Assembly (NCBI RefSeq): GCF_052425735.1
Contig: NC_135768.1
Location: 22,444,001 to 22,508,000, forward strand
DNA length: 64,000 bases
Reading direction: 5' to 3'
Source: Oculina patagonica
Taxonomy: Eukaryota
This document shows, in pieces, positions 90 to 56,496 of the stretch; position 1 is the first letter of the stretch; every line of letters starts with the position of its first letter. Made by a program: the position numbers and the translations under genes. The notes under the pieces are model-generated. The model had not been told where the DNA came from, searched no databases, and saw nothing but the letters and a program-made list of their open reading frames with translations.

Positions 90-3000
90 TTAATCCTCTT
101 TCTTAAATCTTGGAAGAGACGATAAACTGTCTGTTATTCTTATATCTTTCCTTTTGACCCGACCAGACCTGTTTAACTCTTCCATCATTGATATCAGGTC
201 TAGCGTACGCCAGCGCTTGTTAAGAATCTCCAGCATCAAAGTCAAGTCGGTCCGGGAAATTACCATTAGAGTTTCTGGCAGTTTGTTTTGTGTCCACATG
301 AGACTGGATTCCTGCTGAACAACAAACTTAACTTTGTCTGGTATTCCGGTCACCAGCTTATCCAATACATCTTTCGATAACGTTGTCCACATTCTCTTTA
401 CGGTGTAAGACAAGTCAGGCCACGACACAAGGTCCGAGAATACAAAAACAGCAAATAATGAAAGGTTTCCTAAAATAGAAGCGTCATAAAAGACAGAACG
501 TCAGTTTTAGGATGTATAATGTGGCGACAAGGAATGTGAAAACTTATTCAGAGAAATTTTGTGTTCTCTTTACGACCACTAACTAGATATATTGAAATGC
601 AAGCACGGAGACCAATCTTTCTACTTTTTTTAGCTTTCTTCGCAGGATAAATTACAAGGGAAGCATGTACATCTTAAACACATGTCATAAAACTCGCGGA
701 TAGCACTACCATGCCGTGTAACGCTGTTATGAGAAATTGCCGGCTCGGTGCCAAAGGATCTGCCGGTTACGTCAAGTATCGCTATTAACATAACGTTTTG
801 CTTAGACAGACGACAATATAACGCCTTGTTATCCAACTCCAATCAGTAGAATGCAAATATAACAAGTGAAACGAGTTATATGTAGGCCTCCGTTCTAAAG
901 CAAGACCGTTCTCGGTGAGCTAAAGTTCTCTTCATCTCACAATAAAGTTTTCCGAAATTACCTAGAACTGTTAAGCCGATATAAAAATAATGATGGAAAA
1001 TGAAAACGTCAACGAAAACAACTAACCTTTATTTTATTTAGAAAGTTATTAAACTAAAAGAGCTTAAAGCTATGTGTTCAACCACCATTCATGGATTTCA
1101 TGGATAAATTAATAAATAAACAAACAAACAAAAAAAAAAACAAATAAATAAACTCGCTGATAGAACGTGATCGCGCGTGCGTTGTTCTGTAAAGGGACAA
1201 TTTTTCATTATTTTTGACTTAAAAGTACATAACATTTGAGGTTTTGGACTGCAATCCTTTAGAATTTCTACTAAAACAATAAGACTACTCACCCTCGTTT
1301 TATATGAGCGATGGTCAACTCGGCTGTGCCTTGTTGACTATCCGCCCATAGAAATCTGGAGCGTACAGTATAGTTGTTAAAGTGTATATCAAACGGTTTT
1401 TTTTATTTGCCTGATCGAATGTACGTGGAATGCTGATGGGAACATCGAAAAAAGAAATACCGAAATCTCTTTTTTTCACCGCGTTTTCGCGCTCTGAAAT
1501 GGTGAAATTTCACTTCCGGTTGGGTCCAAAACCGCGCACATTGGGGAGCTGGGTCTATTCTGCTTTTGACGTCACGGCCGATCTAGACCCAGCTCCCCAC
1601 GGTGCGCCGTGACGTCAAACAAGAATGCGCTCAGTGATACACTCAATAACCAAACAAACCAAACATGGAATTTTAAAGCTGCGACGGCATAGATTTAAAA
1701 TCGCTAAAAACACAACAACACGTGCGCTACTTCTAAATTCGTTTTGAGCCTAATACGTCAAGATTAAATACCGCCTTTTCATTTTACTTACCTGTACATT
1801 TGCTGATATGATATATGATAGCTTTATTTTCACACGCTGTTTCCATGGGCTTTTCTAAAGAAACTATTATTACACTAGTATCCCTCTAGACTTCAGATCA
1901 TTTATAAACTTCCAAGCCTTTAGCTTTTTTTTCGGTTTTCCGGCAACCAAGCCGCAATCTTCCCTGTTCAGTTTGTTTGGTTCTTGAGTGTATCACTTGT
2001 TTGACGTCACGGCGCCCAGTGGGGAGCTGGATCCAGACCGGCCATGACTTCAAAAGCAGAATAGACCCAGCTCCCCACTGTGCGCGGTTTTGGACCCAAC
2101 CGGAAGTGAAAATATTGCGTGTTTTAGGTCAAAAACGCGGTGAAAAAAACGAGATTTCGAATTTCTTTTTTCGATGTTCGCATCAGCATACCACGTAGAT
2201 TTGATCAGGCAAAAAAAAAAATCTGACATATACACTTTAAATAAAAAACGTAAAAATCCAACTGTTAAGTGTAGTACACTGAATAAGCTCGTTTTACAGG
2301 ACATCACGGCGACCATATTGGTGTTTCCAAACAATGAAAATTATTCTTATGCAAACAACTTCTACTGTTTGGAACACCGATGGCTACCGCGAAAAAGATC
2401 TATATTAGCGTTAGTCAAGTTTTGAAGTAAATTGTACAAAACACTTTAATAAAGGTAATTAAGGATATTTTTTTCTTATTATCACTAACCTTGATTGTGT
2501 ATCCAACTGTCAATGACCGATGACGCAGCCAACTTGGCCTCATCTATCTCCTTACATACCTCCGGTTCTATCTTTTGGATCTCACCCTGTAGTGTTTGCG
2601 TCTCTGATCGCGTCTCCCTACCAAATTTCTTCTTGTCGTCAACAAGCCTTCTTTGCCTGTCAATTACTTTTATCTCCTTTTGCAGGTTAAGTAGCTCTCC
2701 TAATTTTCTGCATTGAATTGTAGTTACCTCGCTCTTGGAGTTAAGATCTTTAAAAAAAGAATCAATCCCTTTTGTGCCACGACTCCCGACACGAGCATCA
2801 ATAATCAAAACAGCAGCATTGCTATGATACGTTGTGGGACGCTCAGCAGTTCTCCTCAATTTTTCTATCTCGTGTAAAGGGAGAGCGGCCCGCAGCGATC
2901 TTGCGGGGTGCGATTTCCTTGGTTTCTCCAGCAAATCCACGAGGTCATACAACTGTAATGCCTCAAACACTTCTTTCATTAGCTTCACAGGAGTGTCCGG

Positions 3001-6000
3001 AAAGTATTTGACAAGATTAACCAATGTGAGCCCACCGAATTTTTGTTTGATTCCGATTCCAAATGACTGATATAAATGTTTTATAGCAACATTGTCAACC
3101 ATTAGCCTTATTGACAGTTCCCTGATGACTTCTATACTGAGATCCTTTAAGCGAAGTGCATAGAGGTCATCTGAAAACAAGAATAAAAAACAACAAAAAT
3201 GAGATAATAGTCAGTTAATGTATAATATAGCTGTGTAATAAGAAAAAGTCGGTTTTGAGGTTAACTTTCTTTTAACTCCTGCAATCCCTACAACCCCTGA
3301 AAAAGGTACCCCTTTCGGGCGCAGCCTTTCCGTATAGTCTACCATAGGGAGGCTCCCCCCGGGTCCGTATAGAAATACCAAGGGTTAATATTCTCCCATT
3401 ACGGACACGAGCAACCTTGGTTAATTAGACAGTTATTGCTCAACTGAAAAATATTTTTATAGATATAAGTGGAAAGCAAAAGAGATGAAAAGAACGGGAT
3501 ACAGTGGAACCCCGATATAACGATATGTCAAGGGAGCAGTAGAACTATATCGGGGTATCGTTATATCGAAACTCCCGATATAACGAGATGGCCGTAAAAT
3601 AACCGAAAATATCGTTATATCGGGGTCAAGCTAACATGTACTTCGATGTACTTCTTTACTGGATAACGAGGCTTAAAACACAGTATCAAAATTGTATATC
3701 ATCATACAAAGCTGTTGTCAAAAACGTTAGAGATTACTCGATGACAGTAAATTTATTGTATTAAATTAAGGGTTTTGCTTAAATTTTGACTGTGTTCTGT
3801 TAATATCGTTATATCGGGGAAGATTTTACGTTCGGTTCGCTAAATTCTCATCGTTATATCGGGGATATCGTTATATCGAAGATCGTTATATCGGGGTTCT
3901 GTCCCATACATTTTACTGTAACTTTTGCCGGGACATAGAATATTCATCGTTATATCGGGAATATCGTTATATCGAAGATCGTTATATCGGGGTTCTGTCC
4001 CATACATTTTACTGTAACTTTTGCCGGGATATAGAATATTCATCGTTATATCGGGAATATCGTTATATCGAAGATCGTTATATCGGGGTTCCACTGTACT
4101 GACCGAGGAACCACCGGACGGATGTTTTGGTTGGAAAAGAATTCCCTAACGTTGTTTTACAAACCAATAGAAAGTTCGAGTGTTTCTTATGCGACTAGCT
4201 TATTGTTTCTCTTTTGTAATCCATTACAATGCACGTATCCGCGCGGGATTATATGACATAACACCCGGTCCAGTAAGAGCTAAAACAAAATTAGTACCAA
4301 CAGGATGCGATGTTAGACGCTGTGTTTTCTTTACGTTTGGGTTACTCAAGTTCATGTTTATTAATTATAGTAATTTATGAATTATGTAACAATTTAGAGC
4401 CCTGTCATGACTCCGATCGAATCACATAGATATCAGTATTGTTCGAGAATGCAAAATTGCATCACCAGTGTATGAAGTTGTTGTATTGACTATAATAAAG
4501 TGATGGCATAATTATAACGAAATATGCATTCAGTTTGTCTTCATTTTTAGAAACGAATTTTGTGTTGTGAATTGAAGGAACATTGGAATAAAAGCTTGCA
4601 AATGACAACACTTAGTGAACGTGATGGAAACAAAATTAAAAAAAATTAAGGGGGAGATCTGCGATCTGCGCTGTGACACCTGCAATGAAGGTATCTCATT
4701 GGTTTATTATAGTTACTGGCCCTCAGATTACTTAAGTCGTGTAATAATAATGTCGAATATTGTCCAAATAACTTGTTGATAGTTACCAGAGATGTCTTCC
4801 ATTCCAATATCAGATGGTGCACCATGTGTTCTTATCCCGCTATCACTCGTCTCTGTCGTCATACTCTGCGTCTCATCACGGATGTTCTGTAGGTAACTCT
4901 GAACGAACGCGTATTTCTCGGAATCAACATATCTCGCTTCATCTCCAACAGATATTTCCTGGGCTCCCTTACCCCCTGTAATCTCCTCGTCTCTTGCTTT
5001 GTAATACAAATCTGAATCAGAATGTCTTCGACGGCTTGTTCCAGGTCTTTCAAGCTTTTCCGTTTCTTGAGCTGTGAAAGGTAACGTGCATCAACAATGT
5101 TAAAGATCGTAGCCAAACTGAATCACTCGTAGAGACAACCATTTAAAGTTGTTTTAATCTCTAACTTTTTTGTGACCGCGATAAAAGTCCCCCCCCCCTC
5201 CCTAAAAAAGGCTCGTCGCGAAGATCATACGTTTTCAATCATCTGTAATAAACATTCCAAAAGGATAGATCGGAGAGCCTTAATACGGTACAATTTTTTA
5301 GTTCCAAAAGCGATGGTGGGCTTTAAATTTAAAGAGGACATCATTATTCCTGAACTGCAGCCGCTTTAGTAGCGTTGTTTTTCAACGCTTTTCACGTTAC
5401 AAGCCATGCACATTTCTGTTTCCGTGCAGAATTATTAGAAACATACTGATAAATAAAACGTTAAGCTCTTACAATCCCTACCATTTACTTCCTCCTGCCA
5501 GTCCAATCTCCTCAGTGCATTTTTCGCTTCCGCAATCTCGGCTTTTAGCTTCTTGTTTTCCTCTTCTAAAGCTTGCAGTCTTTGGCTGTAAAAATTCAAC
5601 TTGTTTTCTGCATGTTTTAGTTTCATCAAAGTTACGTCATCTTCATTTGTTTTGAAGCAAAGAAAAGAGTCGGAGTTCCTTCGACGTCTTCCTGCAAGTG
5701 TTTCTTCGTCTTTGATATCAGACACTGAAAGAAATTCAATGAAAAAAATAATGATGAATTTCTCCTGAATTTTGCATGACCACCGTCTCAGGTTAATCTG
5801 CCTTAACTATACAGATAAATCTGTAAATAAATTTGAGAATCACGAATACTTGACACGGAAAATAAGAATGTAAAATACATATTAAGCCCCTACGCCAGCT
5901 TATAAATTTTACGATTATATTATTTTGTTCCAATTGCACGGAATATAGACAACTTCAGAGGAGATGTTTCGGATGAGGTTTCTGTCTCGCTTGCATTCCT

Positions 6001-9000
6001 CGCGTTTCATTTAACTCACACCATGAACACTGCGCAACAAATCTTGCCGCCTTTTTATACACCCCTTTTTTAAATCAAACTTAAACGTCCACAACACCCA
6101 GTCGATTTACAATTTAAGAAATTCAAAAGATCGATCAATTGCTCGTTTAAGAATTTACGCAAAATGCTACCAGCGACCGAAAACAAAATTTACTGTTCAA
6201 CTATCGATACAATTTGGGATGAGACTCAGATCGCGCACGCGCAGTGCAGGGTGCCTTGGGGGCGGACAATCACGTGGAAACCAAACTTTTTCGGCTGGAT
6301 GGGTTTACCATGATTTTGAAGAAGCATTAGACCAAGATAAGCCTCCTTATACTCCTGTTCGTCGATAAACACAGACACCTCAACGTCTTTACCATTCGCC
6401 AGCTCTTTGACTTCTTCAGTGACAAGGAATTCTTGAAGGCGACTCTGCAATGTTCCACTTTTGTAGATGTCCCATAACTCCTTCAAAGCTGAGGATGTCT
6501 CTGCTTGCACAGTGAAGCACAGGGATCCCTCACTGATCTCAACCAGTTTAGTATATGAGACCAAAACCACTTTGTTAAAGACTTCCACGAATTCGTCAAG
6601 ACTGGAGCAGCTACGTAGAGCCATTCCACTGGAAACCACCAGAAGACCTCCAGCGATCGTACGTATGTTACAAACCATCTTAATGGCTGTTGAAACAAGA
6701 CAATAGGTAAGTGTTGCTGAACGTAATGCTTTGATAATTAATTCTGTGGTACGTTTGAGCACTTAAAGTAAAACGGGAATTCCCTTTTGAGTACAAGGGT
6801 GAATGAATAATTATCTGAAAGATTGGAAAACCAGAGGGGGTTTAGAGAATCAAAGGCACCATGATATTAAGGGAAGGTAGGTAAGTTGAAGTCTGTGTCA
6901 AGCCAAGTGGCCCATACCACTGCAGCTTATCCCAATTTCTGTAGCATTAAGTGACTGGGAGTATTTCTACCCTCTTGGATGGGATGCTAGTCCATCGCAG
7001 GGGTTACCTTCCTCCAAGCATTATTTCTACATTTCTACACCTGGGTGGAGAGGGGGCACTATGAGAGTAAAGTGTCTTGTCCAAGAACACAACACAAATG
7101 ATCCAGGTCAGGGCTCAAACCCAGACCCCTAAATCCGCAGTCCAGTCCAGTTACCCAGGGGGGTACTCAAAGTATACATGACAGGGGGGGAGTGGCCGAC
7201 GTATATTTTTATGAGTTAGAAATTTACATGCTTGGTATTTTTGGGGGTCTGTCTGTTTCTTTAGGGCTTAAAAATGATATGCGTATTTTTTGAGTCTTAT
7301 ATCTGGGCGAACTTTTCGTTTCGGGTTTTCATTGTAATCAGTGGATCAGAAAAATATTCATTTGCACTTTTTTTCAGCGACGTGCATTAGAAAGTTCTGC
7401 TTAATTGAATAAATTAGTATTGAAGTATTTAAGTCTGGGTTGGAAATTTTGATGCCAGGTATTTTTTGGGGTCTAAAATTTTAGGCTTGTGCATTATTTT
7501 GGTTTTGCAATATGAAGCTCTGTTGGACCCCCCCCTCCCCCGTCATGTATACTTCAAGTACCCCCCCAGTGCAGTTACCATTAGGCCACTGTGTTTCCTA
7601 GGGTAAGGGGAGCCCAAAGTTACATTAGTTATACTCATAGGATGTGGAGAGGGCCTATATACAATATTCCAAATACATGTATCTGTGTTATTTTAGGACA
7701 AATTGGCATTTGTGCAAAGGGGGGACAAAGTTGTGTGCACTTTCTGACTGTTCAAGGGTTACATGTAGCTGGTGATAACTTAATTACTTAGCTAACATTC
7801 ACTATATAAAGCTCATTCCCCCTTTTCCTGGTAATTATTGCACTGTTCTTGAGGGAATGAGGAACCACATGAGGTACACACACACAGACAGAAAACATTT
7901 TAACATTGATAGGGCATTGTTAAGTAAGCTAATTTTGGGGCAATTGGACCAGTCATTTGTCAATATGTTTATACTTTAAAAAAGGTAAGGTAAAGTCTGT
8001 GTCTGAGCCAAGTGGCCCATACAGCCGGAACTTATCCCGGTTTCCGTAGCATTAAGCAACTAGGAGTATTGCTAGACATCGCAGAGTTTTTTACTCCCCC
8101 AGCAGTAGAGAAATTCACCAGTACCCCTTTATACACCTAGGTGGAGAAAGGCACTGTGAGAGTGCCTTTGTCTTGCCCAGGCACCGCCCCGGGCAGGGCT
8201 CGAACCCGGGCTGTTTGACACGGAGTCGAGTGCGCTAACCATTAGGCCACTGCACCTTTCATGTGTTTATACTTTAGCCAGAGTTGAATATTTACAGAGA
8301 AGTTTCCCTTTGCATAACTAGAAATGGACGAGGTGGTTGTCAACCAAACTTTTTTGATCCCCCCTCCCCCATCAGTGATGCAAAAAAAAAATATTTGGCC
8401 TTCATTTACAGGCAGCCACCCTCCCCATAAATAATTACCACTCCCTTAATTCTATGGAAATTGCTTATCTGCAGGTGTTTACGGTAATATGAATTTTTGT
8501 TCAAAAGAATTTTATATTGTATACATTTGTTATTGTCTTTACAAGTGTACCAAGATTTCAGTTCTTGAGCTTTTGGCCACTTCAATGACTTGATCCCATC
8601 AGTGGCCTTGTTTATCAGTAAATGGCCGCACCGAGCAACAGCAATTTACTCCCAAGGTAATGGGTTTGAATCACAACAAGGTCAAAAAAGTTTTTGGTCT
8701 CATTTTTCATAGTAATTGGGACTCACAGAAGGAAATTCACAGCGTTATTTTCTCAGTGCTAAAATTACTACACAGTTTTAAGATTCTGTTATTTACAGTT
8801 TGAGTAGCTAGTGTTAGTGCTGTGCGGCTGAACATTGCATTGCACCTGCAGCCTTCAAGTCTAATAAAAAGCTGTATTTCCTTAACTGTTGAGTAGCCAT
8901 CTAAAAAAATTTAATCATTTTTTTTTTTTTAATTAAGTCATAAAAGGGGGCAACCAAGCTCATTTCTAAGCTGTAATGACAGGCTAATTGTCAACCGTAG

Positions 9001-10096
9001 TTAATTGTCATGGTGATGCTTAAAATGTTTGGTCCCATGATTATTTATCATATTTCATTTGATCAACGGTATTAACTTCAAACTGCTACAGTACAAAGTC
9101 AAAATTTATTCAAACTATCCCTCAAGGCTGTCTGCAATGTCAGGTTTATGCCGATGGTACTAAATGGAATGCAGGTACAGGTTGATTGTGGGAGTACAGT
9201 GCACTGGACTCAAGAGCGGTGCCTCTCTAGCCCCAGGTGTATAAATGGGTACCAGTGAAACTATTGCTGTGGGGTAACCCTGTGATGTACTAGCATCCCA
9301 TCCAGGGGGCAGCAGAAATACTCCTAGTTGTTTCACGGCATGGAAACCAGGATACCTACTCAACCAGGATATAACCAAAAATAAAAGATCATATTTGGTT
9401 AAATAAAATAATATTTCAGTTGACATGTTTATGCAGCCTGTTACGTTGCCTCCAAAAACACCAGGGTTGCATGTGGTTTGTTTAAATCTATTTTCTGTCT
9501 AACTCACCTCCTTTTATAGATGTTGCCGCCCGCTTCAACGATGAAACGATACCAACTGATTGGGCTGAAATAAAAGCAGTAGTAATATATAAATCCCTCG
9601 GGGGTAAAAACCACACATCGTAACGTAAAATACGGGTTCTAAAGGGACAAGCACGGAAACTTAGTTAAAGATCACAGAATGACCAAGTAAGGAAACAGTT
9701 AAATTGAAGTTACCAGATTAGTTCAATCGTTTTGTGTATTATAAATAACTGACTTCCGGCATCACAAATTTGCATGTAAGCTTATGTAACCTAGCGTTAT
9801 ACTAAAACATCAAATTCAATTGGAATACCTTTTCTTTTGATCTCAAACTTCTCCACCTTCTTAAGCAGCGGTCGTTTCTTCATCTCTGATAATATCTCTT
9901 TCAGAGTGTCTAAACGATCAATTCCAAGGGAATTGTGTTTCTCTAGTTGTTTAAATAACGCGAGTACATCTCGAATGTTCTCTTCACTGCCTTTCGCTAT
10001 CTTATTTCTGCACATAAAAACCAATCTTGGCAGTTGGTTTCCGTCAAGTTTCTCACTGATCTCGAAAAGAAGATTATTATACTCGATTTCTGACAT
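90..10096 (-). CDS. Multi-domain death-fold protein: DED, TRADD-N-like domain, coiled coil, death-domain-like region, degenerate caspase-like domain (744 aa, 6 coding exons)
   Basis: Exons 10096-9829, 6686-6309, 5724-5482, 5071-4787, 3170-2490 and 469-90 are joined by GT-AG phase-1 introns into one open 2235-nt frame. Exon 1 is DED-like (EYNNLLFEISEKLDGNQLPRLVFMC...LFKQLEKHNSLGIDRLDTLKEIL). Exon 2 GSLCFTVQAETSSALKELWDIYKSGTLQSRLQEFLVT resembles invertebrate TRADD-N-like domains. Gene model confidence is higher than confidence in the C-terminal domain calls. Small extra exons in intron 1 cannot be excluded. Confidence 0.85.
1381..2236. mobile_element. Non-autonomous DNA transposon, Kolobok-like, with long TIRs
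   Basis: TTAA at 1377-1380 and 2237-2240; termini AGTGTATAT...ATATACACT; about 250-bp imperfect inverted arms. RR..YY termini with a TTAA target fit Kolobok. Confidence 0.8.
3502..4096. mobile_element. Tc1/mariner-type MITE with an internal 96-bp tandem repeat
   Basis: TA|CAGTGGAACCCCGATATAACGA ... TCGTTATATCGGGGTTCCACTG|TA; about 2.6 copies of a 96-bp unit at ~3845-4090; many TCGTTATATCG motifs. Confidence 0.9.
6890..7592 (-). mobile_element. tRNA-derived SINE (family A) interrupted by a CCCGGG-type TIR element (~7155-7568)
   Basis: Reverse-complement similarity to the SINE at 10757-11035. The SINE head (CATTAGGCCACTG) resumes at ~7580 after an insertion with GGGGGGTACT...AGTACCCCCCC termini, with CAGTTAC on both sides. 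Confidence 0.75.
7984..8258 (-). mobile_element. tRNA-derived SINE (family A)
   Basis: Minus strand reads GTGGCCTAATGGTTAG (A box) ... GGGTTCGAGCCC (B box), a shared core (CTCCACCTAGGTGTATAAA) and a TTTACC tail. Confidence 0.85.
9190..9355 (+). mobile_element. Degenerate SINE family A fragment
   Basis: Core CCCAGGTGTATAAATGGGTACC...TAGCATCCCATCCAGGGGG shared with 10757-11035. Confidence 0.75.
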
Positions 10097-13541: not shown

Positions 13542-15689
13542 ATGAATATTTCTAAGACTTCATCAGTCGGGAGTGAAAATAATTGTAAAAGCCGTTATGT
13601 CTTCAACAGTATTCCTTGGCGAAATTCTTTATCCGATTCATTTTATGGCTTGCTAGTCGGCGCAGCTGTGTTTAGCTTGGCGACTTGTTCTTTTACCATC
13701 CTTTTAAACGCAGTGGTTATGGTTGCCGTGAAGACCAAACGACGACTTCAAAGAAACGCCAACATTCTGCTGGCTTGTTTGGCGCTTACTGATCTGATGG
13801 TTGGGCTTGTTGTACAACCTCTTCACATAACCAAGACTATTTTCCTGTTACAAGGTAAAGAATTTCATGAACTTTGTGACATTGATTTGGCATTTACTGT
13901 CAGCTATCTCACATTCGTCGTCGCTACAGCGTGTCATTTGGTTTTAATCAGCGGAGAGCGATATCTTGCCATAAAACACACCTTCATTCACTTTGAAGTC
14001 ATCACTAAAACTCGCCTCATGATTTCCTCTACCGTGGCGTGGATCGCAGCTCTTACTTTCTTCCCTATCGTTTCTTATTTACCAATCTATTTATTTGTTT
14101 CACAAGGAACAATCCTTTTCTTAATCGTCTTTTTCCAGATTCTCGTTTACAAGGAAGCCCACCGCCATGAAAAACAGATTCTTTCACAACAAGTTTCCTT
14201 AGAGGCCAGAGCAAAATTTAACCAAGAAAAGAAAGCCTTAAAACTAACCACAATAATATTAGTGGCAATTATTCTGTGTTTCACTTTACCATCAATTTTT
14301 GCCCTCATTACGCAAAAGCTTTTCAAAGAAAAATTTACACCTGAAGTGAAAGCTTTAGTTCTCCATCTAGGTCGTCTGCCTGTGATTTTAAACTCAGTTC
14401 TTAATCCAGTAATTTACTCAGTACGAAAGAGGGAGTTTCGAGTTGCTTTTATTGAGTTGCTTTTAAGAAAAACTTTTCAAGAAGCTGACGAATTTGATAA
14501 GAGACTGTTTGGATCGCCAAACAATGTTGTGAGACTGCAATTGCAACGTGGGCAAGAAGGCGAAGGGACAGAACGAAACGGCGCGGAAAGAAATGTGGCA
14601 CAAGCTAACGTTAACCGTGAAGATAACCCTGAAGTTTTCGCTTCTGGCGCGAATTTGGATGAAAACAACACTGTCGCTAGACAGAACAAGCCTGGTTCCT
14701 CAAGTACACACAACATTGCATCTGAAAAGACACAAGAAGAGATAAGAAATTCCGATGACAGAAATGTGGCCAAAGCAATCGACAACCACGAAGATTATCC
14801 TGAAGTCTTTGCTTCTGGCGCGAATTTCGATGACAACAACACTGTTGCTAAAGAGAAGAAGCCTGGCTCCTCAAGTGTACACAACAGCATATCTGAATTT
14901 AAGACACAAGAAGATTATGGCTTGAGAGGAAATTCCGAGGACAATAATGTGGCCGAAGCAATCGACAACCATGAAGATTTTTCTGAAGTTCTCGCTTGTG
15001 GCGCGAATTTGGCTGACCACAACACTGTTGCCAGACAGTACAAGCCTGGCTCCTCAAGTTCACACAGCAGCACATCTGAAAAGACACAAGAAGATTATGG
15101 CAAGAGAAGAAATTCAGACCACGGTAAAAAGCAGCAGGAAGATGACCCTGAAGTCCTCGCTTCTTGCGCGAATTTGGATGACAATAACACTGTCTCAAGA
15201 CAGAACAAGCCTGTCTCCTCAAATGCACACAACAGCACATCTAAAAAGACACAAAAAGATCACGGCACCTTTCATGGCGAGAGAAGAAATTCCAAAGACA
15301 GAAATGTGGCCCAAGCAATCGACAGCCATGAAGATAACCCTGAAGTTCTCGCTTCTGGTGCGAATTTGGATGACAACAACACTGTTGCTAAAGAGAACAA
15401 GCCTTGCTTCTCAAGTGCACACAACAGCACATCTGAGAAGACACAAGAAGATCATGACGAGAGAAGAAATTCAGACCACGGTAAAAAGCAGCAGGAACAT
15501 GATCCTGAAGTTCTCGCCCCAGGGGTTAGTTTTGAAAGGGAAAGCACTGACCCCACCCCTAACGAGAGCTTATCCTCAAATGAAAGCATCAGAGACGAAG
15601 AAACACAGCTACAAATACGAGTGGACGAATTCGGCGAACCGTTGGACATTGAAACTGTGGAAGAACTCACATACGACACATATTTCTAA
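13542..15689 (+). CDS. Intronless class A (rhodopsin-like) GPCR with long repetitive C-terminal tail, 715 aa
   Basis: Seven hydrophobic segments; TM2 LALTDLMVGL, TM3 ERYLAI, TM6 CFTLP, TM7 LNPVIY, helix 8 REFRVAF; very short ECL2. Ligand class cannot be assigned. Confidence 0.93.
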   Translation: MNISKTSSVGSENNCKSRYVFNSIPWRNSLSDSFYGLLVGAAVFSLATCSFTILLNAVVMVAVKTKRRLQRNANILLACLALTDLMVGLVVQPLHITKTIFLLQGKEFHELCDIDLAFTVSYLTFVVATACHLVLISGERYLAIKHTFIHFEVITKTRLMISSTVAWIAALTFFPIVSYLPIYLFVSQGTILFLIVFFQILVYKEAHRHEKQILSQQVSLEARAKFNQEKKALKLTTIILVAIILCFTLPSIFALITQKLFKEKFTPEVKALVLHLGRLPVILNSVLNPVIYSVRKREFRVAFIELLLRKTFQEADEFDKRLFGSPNNVVRLQLQRGQEGEGTERNGAERNVAQANVNREDNPEVFASGANLDENNTVARQNKPGSSSTHNIASEKTQEEIRNSDDRNVAKAIDNHEDYPEVFASGANFDDNNTVAKEKKPGSSSVHNSISEFKTQEDYGLRGNSEDNNVAEAIDNHEDFSEVLACGANLADHNTVARQYKPGSSSSHSSTSEKTQEDYGKRRNSDHGKKQQEDDPEVLASCANLDDNNTVSRQNKPVSSNAHNSTSKKTQKDHGTFHGERRNSKDRNVAQAIDSHEDNPEVLASGANLDDNNTVAKENKPCFSSAHNSTSEKTQEDHDERRNSDHGKKQQEHDPEVLAPGVSFERESTDPTPNESLSSNESIRDEETQLQIRVDEFGEPLDIETVEELTYDTYF
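14586..15525 (+). repeat. Coding tandem repeat in the GPCR C-tail (5 full units plus 1 partial, ~55-64 aa each)
   Basis: Recurring ED.PEV.ASGANLD.NNTVA...KPGSSS.HN..SEKTQE...RRNS; all indels preserve frame. Confidence 0.95.
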
Positions 15690-19796: not shown

Positions 19797-19927
19797 NNNN
19801 NNNNNNNNNNNNNNNNNNNNNNNNNNNNNNNNNNNNNNNNNNNNNNNNNNNNNNNNNNNNNNNNNNNNNNNNNNNNNNNNNNNNNNNNNNNNNNNNNNNN
19901 NNNNNNNNNNNNNNNNNNNNNNNNNNN
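19797..19927. other. Assembly gap (131 N)
   Basis: Run of N. Confidence 1.
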
Positions 19928-21797: not shown

Positions 21798-24155
21798 TTA
21801 CACAGGGTTCTCGGCTAGCTCCAAGTGATTGTCAGTTTCTGTAATTGTTATTTCAGAAGACACATGTGTGGTTTTCTTGCAGATTAAACGTAAAGATAAA
21901 AACTCTTTCCTATATTCTTTGTTGCTGAGAAAGTAAATCCATGGATTCACAACAGAGTTGGACATCGACAATATCAGGGAAACTTTGGTTCCAATTTGCC
22001 CTTCAAAACCGAATTGAAACAAAATATAAATGATCTGACTTGGGAGCCAGCACCCTGTTAGGACAGCGGCTGTGATAGCACACATGCGCAACAGCAACTT
22101 TTGTTGGGTTTGCGCCTGCTGCGTACTTCCAAATAAGGACGGAGCTGCTTTAATACGATACCAAATATGGATAAATGAAGCCCAGATAATCATTGTCGGA
22201 ATAAGAAATGTTACAGTGGCGTAACTTATAGCAAAAGCCTGTTGCCCCACCTTACCAAAATTATTAGGAATAGATACGCACGTATTATTCTTAAATTCGA
22301 TTTGGGTAAACCTATCAATCAGCAATAAAGCACTGCAGACGAAAATACCCACTATATACATGAAAACATTTTTCCTGGCAAAGAAAACTTTGTGCCTAAA
22401 CGGTATAATTACTGAAGACCATCGTTCTAATGCTAACAGTGTGACAGTCAAGATAGACGCTTTGCTGAGAAGAAATACAAAAAACCTGTTTTCAATCAAA
22501 TAGCAGAAAATATACCCAGCAGGGCCCACGAGGGATGGATCGGTGGTGATGTGAAACAGCGGTGTTGCAAAAATAGTCACCCCTGCAAAGAAAAACAGAA
22601 ATTAATTACATCTGTAGATTTTTTTGAAAAGGCCCAGCAGTGATTAAAGGATCACTTTTCTTTGAAATGTCAATACATATTTATGCAAGCAAGTCGCAAT
22701 GAAAACAAAGCTGGTCACCAACAGGGAATTTAATACCTTAAAATAATTGGTAATTGTATGAAATACTGTTATATATTGATTAATATGGTAAATGGTTTGA
22801 ACCCAGGAGTATCAGTAGGTCGTATAGTGTGATCGTCCGTTTGAGAGTAGTTCTGAGAAGAACTGTTGTTGGTGAATTGATTAATGTAAGCAGAATTTGC
22901 ACTTTGGCAAATTGGCTTATGTCCTATCGGGGATAACGAGAATTTAGTAAGTAAGGAAATGGTTCCAATAAACTAAGGACGATCAGAACTGGTATTCTGA
23001 TAAAAAGATACATTAGTAATCTTAGTAATTGTAAGTTAACATTTTTAAGTATTTTAGTATTTTTCAATTAGTATTTGTAAATTAGCAACTTTAATTTTGT
23101 AACACGACCCCACAAGAGACAGGTTTAATTTATATCGTACATAAATAAAAGTTTTTGCATTGTATTGTATTGTATCTTTGTCGTTGCCTTTGTTGCTCCA
23201 CTATTTAACTTGAAATGGATGATTGCTACTCCGGCCGGTTGCTGCGCGACAATATGAGTGAATTTCTTGTAATTTAAATATTGAAATTTATAGCTTGATT
23301 TTATATCACATGAAAATAGATTTTGCAAAAAAGACCCCAGTCGCAAATTAAGGGATCTTCAGAAAAATTCCTAATATTTGATTTGTAGTGCTGTAGGTCC
23401 CGTATTCCTTTCTCCCTCTACAGTCTAGTTTTTCCTTTTAAAATATTGGAACGTCCTGGAGCAAATTTATGATCTTGTATGGACTGATTGAGTTTACTTC
23501 TCAAACAAGCAACTGCTGGCCGCTTGAAATTTATCATTATATATAAAGGGACTATGTCACCGATTTTAACAGACTTTTGAACAGCCAAAATTTACATTGG
23601 TGTCGTAGAAAACTTAAAATAGTGGTCTATTTGTATTAACAATTGCCATTTTAGAGCACTCGAACTGTTTAAAAGCGCGTTTGGCTGCGGATGGCTCAGA
23701 TGGAAATGGATTGCAATTTGAAAACGTTAGCCAACGTTTTCAAGTTGTTTCCAGTGTTTCAGCCGGGCGCCTTCTAAAAAATCGATATTTATAGCCGAAG
23801 TTTGATTTCTATCCCCGAATAAAGGTTATATCTTCAGTTAAATGTTCAAAGATAATGTTTTTCATGGGTAAAGTTGCTTACCACTTATTTCGGAACACGG
23901 TTTAGACCAAAAATCTATCTACAAAGTCCCCATGACATAGTCACTTATATCTATGTGTGCTGAAGATTAGTTTGAATTCAAGAATCAACTAATGTTACCT
24001 GTCATCATATCAATCGTAGCTAAAGTCAGCAGTAGAATATTGTGAGGCTTTTTCAACCAGACGGGCTTCTTATACAGCAGAAAACAAAACAGAGCGTTGC
24101 TGACAATCGACGCCGTTGCAATGAAACCAAACGTGGCCCCAAGCGCTGCACTCAT
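21798..24155 (-). CDS. Class A GPCR, 2 coding exons, 313 aa
   Basis: Exon 24155-23999 (MSAALGATFGFIATASIVSNALFCFLL...HNILLLTLATIDMMTG, TM1-TM2) splices in phase 1 to 22582-21798 (LALERW, CWLP, NSVVNPWIY, KEYRKEF). An in-frame TGA lies just upstream of the ATG. Confidence 0.9.
23546..23945 (+). mobile_element. Kolobok-like MITE family K, full copy in the GPCR intron
   Basis: AGGGACTATGTCAC ... ATGACATAGTCACT; high similarity to three other copies. Confidence 0.88.
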
Positions 24156-45067: not shown

Positions 45068-45265
45068 CTAGTAAATGGCCCAGCTCACAACGAGTCTCTC
45101 GTAGCTCAGTTGGTTAGAGCGCCCAACCGGTATCTGAGAGGCCATGGGTTCGATTCCCGTCGGGGACTCAGATTTTTTCTTTGTCCCATGGCCCACGCTC
45201 GAGTCATGGTGAATAATTTCTTCACTATTTATCACCAAGCTTAAAATTTACCATCTTTATTATTA
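45068..45265 (+). mobile_element. tRNA-derived SINE-like repeat (family C)
   Basis: GTAGCTCAGTTGGTTAGAGC (A box) and GGGTTCGATTCCC (B box), but no proper anticodon stem; continues into a non-tRNA body. Confidence 0.7.
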
Positions 45266-54532: not shown

Positions 54533-56496
54533 ATGAAATCCATTTATTTGCTGTTGCTTGTAACTTTCGCAGAGTCTTATCCCGATCATGAAGGAATCCT
54601 GGTGAGTTTACATAGGCAATGTTAAGACGTCTTTGTCTTTGAAAGTTGACTTGCAATTTAATAGCGCGTAGGTTATTGCTAGTTGATATCCCGGGGGGGG
54701 TACTCCATATAATGGCCTATACGGGGAGGCTCCGCCCGAAAAGGGTACCTTTTTCAGGCTTCAGGTATATAAAAGGGTAGGGATTTCACAAGTTTAGGTA
54801 TATGAAAGGGTATCTAAATCCGTCATTTACGTTTTCAAAAGGGCCTTGAATTAAAATATTTCGAACAGACGCAATTTATGGCTGTATTATTTTAATTTAT
54901 TAAGCGCAACATGAAAATTACAAGAAAACGTCCTCTTCTAAGTCTATGCCATGTCTTTTAGGTATATGAAAGGGGTACCTATTTTCAGTAAAAGGTGTAC
55001 GAAAGGGGTACAATTTCTGTGAAAATGGTATATAAAAGGGTAAGGGGTAAGAGCTTGGGGCGGAGCCTCCCCGTATAAAACTTTTTTTGAGTGCCCCCCC
55101 CCCCCCCCCCCCGGGGTTGATATCATCTGCAACAGTAAGAATCACAAGTTGCCAGGTCTGTACATGTGCAGAACGTTTCGTCTTTCTAACTACATGGCTC
55201 CAAGGCTTTGGGTCTAAAAAATGGCCGGCTCCAGGGCTCCAGAACCGTGCTTTGAGGCAAAGGTTTTCAGCGCCTCCATGATCAGCAGAAAAATCTCTGG
55301 GGGGAGGGGGGTACACCCATATATGAGCAATATATATAGGTATGTGCCGCTGTGAAGGGTATGGTTTTTTAAGCAGCTTAGTCTGGGATAGGGCATAGAA
55401 ATCAGAGAATTTTGGGCTAGAATAGGATGTCATTTTCCGGAAACTGAACGGTGGTATGGTGGTATGATGAATTAGTTCAGAATAGGAACAGAAACTCGGA
55501 AGAGAAAGAGAGTTTCCTAAACGTAAATAAAATCATCACAGCAATGTTTTTGAGAGATGGTTTGCTATTAAGTCTGGGATAGGTAGGGAGTTTGGTGTCT
55601 AGTCTGGTATAGGGTTGCAAAATCAACTAAACATGGTCTGGTATAGGGTTAGGGTTTCAGAGTCCCAGCAGGACTCCTCCACCCAAAAATATACAGAATA
55701 CCTCCCCGGGAGCAAAATAAGTTTAGGGCTCTGAGCAAAAGAATGGGGAGCCAGCCACACGCAATTTCGCCTTCTTCATTTTATTTTTTTGTATAAATTT
55801 TAGTCTCTCAATAGCACCAACTCGAAAGAAGAAAGATTCATTCCCAGATCCTGTTTGGACTACTTGCAACATGGCGAACATAAGGATGGCTTTTATTATC
55901 TCCATGACGACTACGATCAGCCCTACATGGTTTACTGCGACCTGTCAAATGAGCCCGGGTCAGCCTGGACTCTAGTCCTATCTTGGTTTTCAGTGTACGC
56001 CCGGTTTTTGCCTTATTTTAGTAGCAAGGCATTTTCTGAAGACGCGCCAATCAACGCAGAGACTCCGAACTGGTACATTTACCGGCAGAATCTGGCTCGC
56101 ATGAACACCATCCGCAAACACTCGACACATTGGCGCGCAACATGCGACTACCAGAGGACGCAAACGATCGAGTATCAAGATTACCTCAGGGGCAAATTCA
56201 ACGACTTTGACATCATGAAATTTCAGGGGAGTGGTTCTTGTCGGCCAGTAGAGTATATCAATATTCTTGGAAAAACTGCTAAACATGGCGCCACCGTGGC
56301 ATTCTGGCAGGAGCCTGGTAACTATAGTCTTCACATCTTCAGTTCTAATACTGACTGTGACTTTGCCCCTTGGTTTGAACCATATTGCGACTTCTTCGGT
56401 TTCTATGGCGACGGGCTTAACACTATATTCCGTTGTTCTCTGTATGATAATTCTACAACGCAGTGGTGGTTTGGTGGATACTTAAACGAAAAGTGA
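54533..56496 (+). CDS. Secreted fibrinogen-related-like protein, paralog B (253 aa, 2 exons)
   Basis: Exon 54533-54601 (MKSIYLLLLVTFAESYPDHEGIL) splices in phase 0 to 55804-56496. Exon lengths (69 + 693 nt) and Cys/Trp pattern match paralog A. Confidence 0.88.
54690..55115. mobile_element. CCCGGG-terminus MITE with 8-bp target duplication (P- or hAT-like)
   Basis: GTTGATAT|CCCGGGGGGGGTACTC ... GAGTGCCCCCC..CCGGG|GTTGATAT. Confidence 0.88.
55295..55710. mobile_element. Second CCCGGG-type MITE in the paralog B intron
   Basis: AGAAAAAT|CTCTGGGGGGAGGGGGGTAC ... ATACCTCCCCGGG|AGCAAAAT; internal TCTGG(G/T)ATAGGG repeats. Confidence 0.75.

Follow-up and report, generated by a model that had tools for sequence, protein, structure and literature searches.

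The 64,000-nucleotide stretch of DNA analysed here (the window) comes from the stony coral Oculina patagonica (contig NC_135768.1, positions 22,444,001 to 22,508,000 of the forward strand). Towards its beginning, the minus strand carries a gene that encodes a protein of 763 residues, P0304, which is the same as XP_078345183.1 / KAL9959133.1 ('hypothetical protein ACROYT_G036221', Oculina patagonica). Positions in P0304 were mapped onto the window using tblastn. The identical gene span of 10,007 nt is recorded on scaffold CM126645.1 of assembly GCA_052425735.1, a 24-Mb chromosome scaffold. The gene has six GT-AG introns and is adjoined by a G-protein-coupled receptor (GPCR) gene. In order from the N-terminus, P0304 consists of a death effector domain (DED), a TRADD-like N-terminal domain (TRADD-N), a coiled coil, a disordered linker, a Death-like helical bundle and a caspase-like domain. 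The last of these is the subject of this report: structure prediction gives good support to the view that the last two exons encode a caspase-fold domain without either of the catalytic residues.

The caspase-like domain is interrupted by intron 6. The splice sites of this intron (donor CAAG/GTTAGT and acceptor TATTTTAG/GA, where the slash marks the junction) are both in phase 1, and the joined exons read ...WIHNQ-G-NLSLFAVFVF..., matching P0304. The position of the intron is common to the relatives of the gene: all 14 of the 14 aligned exon-6 open reading frames (ORFs) from other contigs end after WIxNQG, and the last exon of two other loci opens at the same residues as exon 7 of the window. 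A 4,972-nt contig that resembles a transcript encodes another relative, P0311 (905 residues), as one unbroken reading frame. Because the P0304 translation, the WIxNQG ends, the starts of the last exons and the P0311 contig all agree, we regard the intron 6 splice as confirmed. Exon 7 supplies strand 3, helix 3, strand 4, strand 5, helices 4 and 5, strand 6 and the C-terminal motif of the domain.

A caspase fold at this locus had been proposed beforehand from an alignment made by eye on the letters of the sequence (the original prediction). The span that it gave, 90–2830, runs from the stop codon (92–90) to the PTTYHS start of the domain (2838), and its continuous reading across 2489–470 holds once intron 6 has been spliced out. 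All of the peptides that it quoted are present, on the minus strand and within exons 6 and 7. Those of exon 6 are AAVLIID (2817–2797), GTKGIDSFFKDL...EVTT (~2778–2719) and the charged stretch LNLQKEIKVIDRQRR...EIDEAK (inside 2709–2497); those of exon 7 are LFAVFVFSDL (from 458 down), PDKVKFVVQQESS (~341–303), PETLMVIS (~278–255) and MLEILNKRWRTLDLISMMEELNR (~236–168).

In caspases the elements of secondary structure follow one another in the order strand 1, helix 1, strand 2, helix 2, strand 3, helix 3, strand 4, strand 5, helix 4, helix 5 and strand 6. We predicted the structures of P0304 and of a relative, P0127, using AlphaFold2 (AF2) with an alignment built around full-length relatives (97–101 sequences from one lineage, many of them single-exon fragments). 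P0127 has 351 residues, is ~40% identical to the window protein and contains only the helical bundle and the C-terminal domain. Its model has a mean predicted local distance difference test score (pLDDT) of 84.9 and a predicted template-modelling score (pTM) of 0.83. The model of P0304 has a mean pLDDT of 80.1, with most of residues 520–760 above 90, and the five AF2 models agree within ~2.5 pLDDT units. Both models place the strands and helices in the caspase order, and each of the matches made by eye falls on the corresponding element: AAVLIID on strand 1, GIDSFFKDL on helix 1, EVTTIQ on strand 2, LFAVFVF on strand 3, KFVVQ on strand 4, TLMVIS on strand 5, and LTLMLEILNKR and LISMMEELNR on helices 4 and 5 (Table 1).

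Table 1. Features of the pseudo-caspase candidate gene and of the remainder of the window. Nucleotide positions are those of the window and residue numbers are those of P0304.
Feature	Nucleotides	Residues	Strand	Sequence, basis or remark
Whole gene, start to stop codon, seven exons	90–10096		−	GT-AG exon chain translating exactly to P0304
Exon 1, DED	9829–10096	1–89	−	Pfam PF01335
Exon 2, short helical linker	9508–9564	90–108	−	In AF2, part of long helix 75–106
Exon 3, TRADD-like N-terminal domain	6309–6686	109–234	−	Pfam PF20694
Exon 4, basic-Ser motif RRRRNSDS, then long coiled-coil helix	5482–5724	235–315	−	AF2 helix 260–315
Exon 5, predicted disordered linker with conserved short motifs	4787–5071	316–410	−	Low pLDDT
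Exon 6, Death-like domain, conserved linker, caspase-like N-terminal half	2490–3170	411–637	−	100% identity to P0304 411–638
Intron 6, 2,020 nt, interrupts caspase-like domain	470–2489		−	Phase 1
Exon 7, caspase-like second half	90–469	638–763 + stop codon (92–90)	−	100% identity to P0304 638–763
Death-like helical bundle	2926–3153	About 417–492	−	AF2
Caspase-like domain, first half	2490–2838	522–637	−	AF2, pLDDT mostly 80–97
Strand 0		523–526		TTYH; AF2 of P0304
Strand 1		529–535		AAVLIID; AF2 of P0304
Helix 1		543–553		TKGIDSFFKDL; AF2 of P0304
Strand 2		558–563		EVTTIQ; AF2 of P0304
Helical hairpin between strands 2 and 3	2497–2709	565–587 and 591–635	−	AF2 helices
Strand 3 and following loop	426–458	642–652 (strand 642–648)	−	LFAVFVF-SDLV; catalytic-His position in caspases
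Helix 3		659–679		AF2 of P0304
Strand 4 and following loop	303–332	684–693 (strand 684–689)	−	VKFVVQ-QESS; catalytic-Cys position in caspases
Strand 5		704–709		TLMVIS; AF2 of P0304
Helix 4		713–723		LTLMLEILNKR; AF2 of P0304
Helix 5		729–743		LISMMEELNRSGRVK; AF2 of P0304
Strand 6		747–751		IRITD; AF2 of P0304
Short strand		756–759		LPRF; AF2 of P0304
Helix 4, helix 5, strand 6 and LSSLPRF C-terminal motif	105–245		−	Best-conserved part besides buried hydrophobics
Inverted repeat in intron 6	Within 1377–2240; arms 1398–1623 and 1996–2221			226 nt, 85% complementary
Tandem repeat inside intron 5	3848–4091			96-nt unit, 2.5 copies, 98% matches
GPCR gene, rhodopsin family	13542–15689		+	Pfam 7tm_1, E 1e-24
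Run of 131 N	19797–19927
ORF of 313 residues	19994–20935		−	Weak zf-RVT match, E 6e-4, below cut-off
GPCR gene, rhodopsin family	21798–22580		−	Pfam 7tm_1, E 7e-20
tRNA-like sequence	45098–45164		+	Rfam 33.8 bits versus gathering score 29
Paralogous ORF pair, 222 and 213 residues	49085–49753 and 55855–56496		+	Common motifs

Both models were compared with 350,542 PDB chains using Foldseek, and the best 50 matches were listed for each. For P0127 these best 50 are all caspases (E values of 7.7e-5 to 1.6e-3, probability 1.00, template-modelling score by target of 0.45–0.68, identity of 8–16%) and include caspase-6, -9, -3, -7, -1, -4 and -11, drICE, Dronc, an insect pro-caspase and a scleractinian caspase (PDB entry 6wi4). 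For P0304 the best 50 are all caspases or cFLIP-L, with the addition of CED-3, the caspase-8:cFLIP-L complex (3h11_B) and cFLIP-L itself (3h13). TIR, flavodoxin and response-regulator (CheY) structures do not appear among the best 50 PDB matches of either model, and neither do MALT1 or other paracaspases. A library of predicted viral structures gave no match at E values up to 0.001; its weak matches include a TIR domain in second place (E value of 0.01, probability 0.95, template-modelling score by target of 0.39) and several viral caspases. In these predicted models, the resemblance to caspases exceeds what would be expected by chance.

The catalytic histidine of caspases is located in the loop that follows strand 3, and their catalytic cysteine in the one that follows strand 4. 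The corresponding residues of the window protein are SDLV after strand 3, with no histidine, and QESS after strand 4, with no cysteine. Taken column by column, histidine occurs in 0–2 of 15–53 sequences in the strand-3 loop and cysteine in 0–2 of 41–62 sequences in the strand-4 loop. Among the 47 relatives which cover both loops, five have any histidine after strand 3, two have any cysteine after strand 4 and none has both. Neither residue is found among the 40 best-conserved columns of residues 412–763. The absence of both catalytic residues, as the original prediction had it, is seen in the window protein, and the pair is complete in none of the 47 relatives.

The aspartate-binding pocket of caspases consists of a conserved arginine after strand 1, a glutamine before the catalytic cysteine and an arginine after strand 5. 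By topology, the residues of the window protein near these places are R537/R541, Q689/Q690 and R710; R541 is present in 12 of 66 relatives and R710 in eight of 57. Basic residues after strands 1 and 5, the places of the aspartate-binding arginines, are not conserved, and the presumed substrate-pocket loops vary in both sequence and length among the relatives. The connection between strands 4 and 5 (QESSLMWTQNKLPE) is 14 residues long and contains no aspartate, and there is therefore no cleavable intersubunit linker. By its dyad, its sequence profile (described below) and its linker alike, the C-terminal domain fails as an active caspase.

The fold had also been described as interrupted by a charged helical stretch of about 50 residues. 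The interruption is real and variable in length, but in the AF2 model it takes the form of a hairpin of ~70 residues (565–635). From strand 2 to W633 the window protein has 69 residues, whereas the figure for 66 relatives is anywhere between 6 and 163, with insertions and deletions seen in the exon-6 alignment; the hairpin is thus a hypervariable excursion, as expected for an insertion. W633 itself (in …SVIDSWIHNQ) is common to 96% of the relatives. Judging from the model, this end of the hairpin probably packs on the sheet and replaces helix 2 of caspases.

Among the domains ahead of the caspase-like domain, the DED matches Pfam PF01335 with E values of 4.3e-19 (exon 1) and 3e-17 (P0304 residues 6–85), and TRADD-N matches PF20694 with E values of 9.4e-8 (exon 3) and 4.3e-7 (P0304 residues 137–200), in each case above the curated cut-off. 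The Pfam matches of exon 4 are to coiled-coil families only, all below the cut-offs, and exon 5 matches no Pfam family. In the AF2 model of P0304 the pLDDT falls below 50 at residues 310–363 and 381–411. Short motifs in the predicted disordered linkers are very well conserved: the columns of RRRRNSDS are common to 12 of 12 relatives, and in the exon 5 motif T388-E-T-S-D-S-G394 the residue of the window protein is found in 17–19 of 20 relatives per column. We also note a second basic-Ser stretch, RRRHSDSD, after RRRRNSDS; the linker motifs are situated at residues 247–254, 328–335 and 388–394. By their sequence these motifs look like kinase sites, and the aspartate-bearing motif ahead of the Death-like domain could, speculatively, be a putative caspase cleavage site.

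The Death-like bundle is predicted as five to six short helices at residues 423–491, with a pLDDT of ~90 in three of seven ten-residue blocks and of 58–77 in the other four. The Pfam Death profile does not match this bundle in any of 23 family members at E values up to 10. The UniRef name of one relative, P0317, is 'Death domain-containing protein', and the bundle of the orthologues is labelled 'Death' in supplementary file 18 of Kaur et al. (2021; PMC8195603).

A search with exon 6 alone returned 316 relatives at 90% clustering, exon 7 alone found 35 and a profile search gave 161 representatives at 50% clustering; most of these relatives are single-exon ORF calls from coral assemblies. The named full-length relatives all belong to the Scleractinia: Oculina patagonica, Orbicella faveolata, Stylophora pistillata, Porites evermanni, Montipora foliosa, M. 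capricornis and Desmophyllum pertusum. The 24-Mb scaffold of the window gene carries at least seven Oculina paralogues, and their locus numbers are close by. In two of the Oculina proteins, P0301 and P0303, HEPN_DZIP3 takes the place of the DED before the same TRADD-N, Death-like and pseudo-caspase modules, and P0136 and some other relatives show a second DED-like stretch in the alignment. Across the family the alternation of hydrophobic strands and amphipathic helices is conserved. Leaving aside buried hydrophobic positions, the best-conserved residues of the domain include K685, P681, E703 and L705 at the starts of strands 4 and 5. A further nine residues are each common to 85–92% of the relatives, namely K722, W724, L729, S731, E735 and R738 in helices 4 and 5, and L753, P757 and R758 in the LSSLPRF motif. 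The dimer interface of caspases is formed by helix 5 and strand 6, and by analogy the conservation at helix 5 and strand 6 in this family would be consistent with a conserved pairing surface.

Two further observations concern the paralogues. The 682-residue model P0210 consists of the C-terminal half of one member followed by the TRADD-N and linker of another. Two tandem paralogues seem to have been joined in this gene model, in keeping with such genes standing in arrays in other corals. In addition, P0121, P0301, P0302, P0303 and P0305 extend for eight residues beyond KKED (…KKED-PIPLTHST), whereas the window gene has a TAA stop codon directly after KKED with the extra residues of the paralogues still in frame downstream. 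Because the same downstream residues continue in frame, the stop codon may be a recent gain in the window copy, or may have been lost in the other paralogues.

The window protein belongs to the cnidarian expansion of DED and TRADD-N proteins (the DEDD2 clade). According to Kaur, Iyer, Burroughs and Aravind (2021; PMC8195603), the TRADD-N proteins of the DEDD2 clade have expanded in a lineage-specific manner among cnidarians, to 17–168 copies, in which the DED and TRADD-N are constant and the C-termini are variable, and the Orbicella and Stylophora orthologues of the window protein (XP_020616562.1 and XP_022808331.1) are tabulated among them. The C-terminus of the coral orthologues is labelled 'domain1' there and not caspase, and 'domain1' is not discussed in the text (PMC8195603). 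The 'domain1' alignment consists of ~100-residue sequences, among them bivalve ones (Crassostrea, scallop), and the three coral accessions searched for are absent from it (PMC8195603). The same study tabulates a protein from Orbicella faveolata, XP_020625600.1, as 'HEPN+TRADDN-DEDD2+CASPASE' (PMC8195603); by this label, the protein has a caspase module after TRADD-N within the same expansion. True caspase domains thus do follow TRADD-N in this expansion. The caspase of XP_020625600.1 was recognizable by sequence to the authors of that study, whereas the domain of the window protein is not recognizable in this way. Vertebrate DEDD2 (FLAME-3) binds cFLIP (PMC8195603). It has a DED and then a TRADD-like N-terminal domain, as does the window protein, but has no Death-like or caspase-like domain; the window protein can be said to combine a DEDD2-like half and a cFLIP-like half in a single chain.

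cFLIP-L is a pseudo-caspase which pairs with caspase-8 and alters its activity (PMC11121540). The original prediction suggested a cFLIP-like pseudoenzyme, and this stands as an analogy but not as a sequence relationship. In both proteins an N-terminal DED is combined with a C-terminal caspase fold without the catalytic cysteine and histidine, and 3h13 and 3h11_B are among the best 50 Foldseek matches of the window model. The architectures differ, however. By Pfam the window protein has one DED, compared with the tandem DEDs of cFLIP, and it interposes a TRADD-like N-terminal domain, a coiled coil, a disordered linker and a Death-like domain. Within the fold it has the ~70-residue hairpin and a strand 4–strand 5 loop of 14 residues, and the family, as judged from the named relatives, is confined to stony corals and expanded there. 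The cFLIP-L sequence, which is present in the PDB (3h13), was missed by the family profile at E values up to 10. Orthology with cFLIP, or membership of the cFLIP family, is not supported and the likeness is one of analogy.

Active caspases (Peptidase C14A; caspase-6, -9, -3/-7 and -8, drICE, Dronc, CED-3 and 6wi4) share the predicted fold and provide the best structural matches, and active initiator caspases also have a death-fold domain upstream. In contrast to them, the window domain has no His-Cys dyad, no conserved basic residues at the pocket positions as placed by topology, no PF00656 match and no intersubunit linker, and it carries the extra hairpin. MALT1-type paracaspases, which act in signalling scaffolds, have a Death-fold domain N-terminal to the caspase fold, and the window protein has a Death-like bundle before its predicted caspase fold. 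Paracaspases keep the His-Cys dyad, are active and have Ig domains between the Death and protease domains.

We consider it probable that this region is the C-terminal pseudo-caspase of a stony-coral death-fold adaptor which has lost its dyad and presumably acts by binding. Several points weigh against this interpretation. The fold is known as a predicted rather than a solved structure, and the two AF2 models are not fully independent because most of the alignment is common to both. The histidine and cysteine positions were assigned by topology, as the loops after strands 3 and 4, without residue-level superposition. At the level of sequence, the Pfam Peptidase_C14 profile (PF00656) matches neither the two exons (E values up to 1) nor P0304 (E values up to 0.01), and PF00656 is absent among the 25 families listed for 23 family members at E values up to 10. 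The 97-sequence family profile retrieved no caspase, cFLIP, MALT1/paracaspase or TIR sequence from the PDB at E values up to 10. Finally, the Foldseek matches to caspases are modest (E values of ~1e-4, root-mean-square differences of 5–9 Å, identity of 8–16%), and common descent from caspases is consequently likely but unproven. The profile silence is general: no Pfam family matches the last 350 residues of P0304 or of 22 relatives at E values up to 10, Pfam TIR has no match among the 23 family members, and the best match of the family profile to PDB sequences is at chance level (a tRNA hydroxylase, E value of 0.23). The similarity to the caspase fold put forward in the original prediction is thus upheld by predicted structure but not by the Peptidase_C14 profile.

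An alternative is a generic three-layer α/β interaction module, Rossmann-, TIR- or flavodoxin-like, whose likeness to caspases would be convergent, with no evolutionary or mechanistic link to them. The missing sequence-profile link to caspases, the Foldseek E values of ~1e-4 and the weak viral TIR match would all speak for such a module. However, the PDB is rich in TIR, CheY and flavodoxin structures, yet 100 of the 100 listed matches are to caspases or cFLIP-L. The tail specific to caspases (strand 5, helix 4, helix 5, strand 6) is present in the models, the domain is placed after death-fold domains as caspase domains are, and another coral protein of the expansion has a true caspase domain after TRADD-N. 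On balance, convergence from a generic module appears unlikely to us. A more sceptical view is that the fold is an artefact of structure prediction and that the exons encode a helical or partly disordered tail. The moderate depth of an alignment drawn from one lineage lends itself to this view, as does the fact that prediction is the source of the fold. Against it can be set the pLDDT of 80–97 across the domain, the pTM of the two-domain relative, the agreement of the five models, the recovery of the same fold from two proteins that are 40% identical and the pattern of hydrophobic strands and amphipathic helices which the family conserves. We therefore judge an artefact to be very improbable.

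If the fold is accepted, the domain could still be an enzyme, a protease or other, that uses non-canonical residues, and the high conservation of the polar residues K685, E703, E735, R738, S731 and R758 might be read in this way. These residues, however, belong to the beginnings of strands, to helices 4 and 5 and to the C-terminal tail, outside the strand-3 and strand-4 loops; there is no conserved histidine or cysteine anywhere in the domain, and the loops of the would-be pocket vary in sequence and length. Such an enzyme is, in our estimation, less probable even than an artefact of prediction. The least probable of the alternatives, to which we assign next to no likelihood, is a viral FLIP-like protein aimed at host caspase-8. 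The original prediction implied a virus by referring to a 'host caspase-8', and nothing beyond the occurrence of a DED together with a dead caspase-like domain points in this direction. The gene is an intron-bearing coral nuclear gene: it has six GT-AG introns, is located on the 24-Mb Oculina patagonica chromosome scaffold with a GPCR gene as its neighbour, and has paralogues with nearby locus numbers on the same scaffold. Viral origin was rejected on this gene structure and genomic location and because no viral structure was matched at E values up to 0.001.

Returning to the pseudo-caspase interpretation, the models and the analogy with cFLIP suggest that the domain may be a previously unrecognized, highly degenerate pseudo-caspase which works like cFLIP. 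Descent from a real caspase is most likely, because TRADD-N is followed by a true caspase domain in a different coral protein of the expansion. On this scheme a caspase ancestor would have lost the histidine after strand 3, the cysteine after strand 4 and the long cleavable loop between the subunits, and would have acquired, ahead of strand 3, a helical hairpin whose length varies. The resulting protein, unable to cut protein, would act through binding. Its DED and Death-like domain would bring it into death-fold assemblies, where the dead caspase domain could dimerize with its own kind or with a live caspase of the coral, tuning the activation of that caspase in the way that cFLIP-L acts on caspase-8. 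Pairing would take place through the caspase dimerization face (helix 5 and strand 6), the best-conserved area of the family. The cFLIP-like mechanism proposed here is an analogy, and this too counts against the interpretation. A bolder version would be that a counterpart of cFLIP arose in stony corals separately from that of vertebrates, from a caspase decayed past recognition by sequence and fused to a DEDD2-like DED and TRADD-N, so that DEDD2 and cFLIP, binding partners in vertebrates, would be united in one fusion protein, and that the arrays of paralogues, with their hairpins of differing length, serve as tunable brakes or switches on coral DED-caspase activation in immunity, allorecognition, symbiosis or bleaching; we put this forward tentatively and consider it doubtful in its entirety.

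The control of cell death is central to coral bleaching, disease and symbiosis, and inventories of coral caspases rely on sequence profiles, which are blind to the domain of the window protein. If the pseudo-caspase interpretation is correct, dead caspases linked to DED, TRADD-N and Death domains form an expanded family in stony corals, on a scale of at least seven Oculina paralogues on one scaffold and hundreds of related public sequences. The region listed as 'domain1' in the sole systematic study of these proteins would also receive a name and a role that can be tested. Such a family would be a second, independent DED-linked pseudo-caspase besides cFLIP and would suggest that the regulation of caspases by decoy caspases arose more than once in animals. 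The case further indicates that a topological alignment made by eye is able to find what profile methods miss.

The window as a whole is intron-rich coral chromosomal DNA and is non-viral. Its G+C content is 31–43% per 2-kb window and ~39% overall. Its ORFs are short and scattered, and it also contains two GPCR genes of the rhodopsin type, the remnant of a retroelement and a single assembly gap (Table 1). The first GPCR gene, which is also annotated as a 715-residue gene on the Oculina scaffold, encodes a C-terminal tail of ~400 residues of degenerate repeats (…NVA.AID.HED.PEVLASGANLDDNNTVA…). The 313-residue ORF adjoining the run of N is, from its sequence, probably the tail of a non-LTR (long terminal repeat) retrotransposon; retrotransposons are frequent near the TRADD-N genes of the cnidarian expansion (Kaur et al., 2021; PMC8195603). 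Within the pseudo-caspase gene itself, the arms of the intron 6 inverted repeat are 372 nt apart and smaller nested palindromes are present. This structure looks like either two inverted copies of a repeat element or a foldback insertion resembling a miniature inverted-repeat transposable element (MITE). The tandem repeat of intron 5 yields a repetitive ORF, 'EPRYNDLRYNDIPDITMNI...'.

An Rfam scan of the window gave nothing except the tRNA-like element, which is distant from the gene and could be either a tRNA gene or a tRNA-derived short interspersed nuclear element (SINE). The paralogous ORFs of 222 and 213 residues have no Pfam match at E values up to 0.01. They share the motifs …CDLS.EPGSAWTLV.SW…STHWRATCD…TTQWWFGGYL… and look like an uncharacterized duplicated coral gene.

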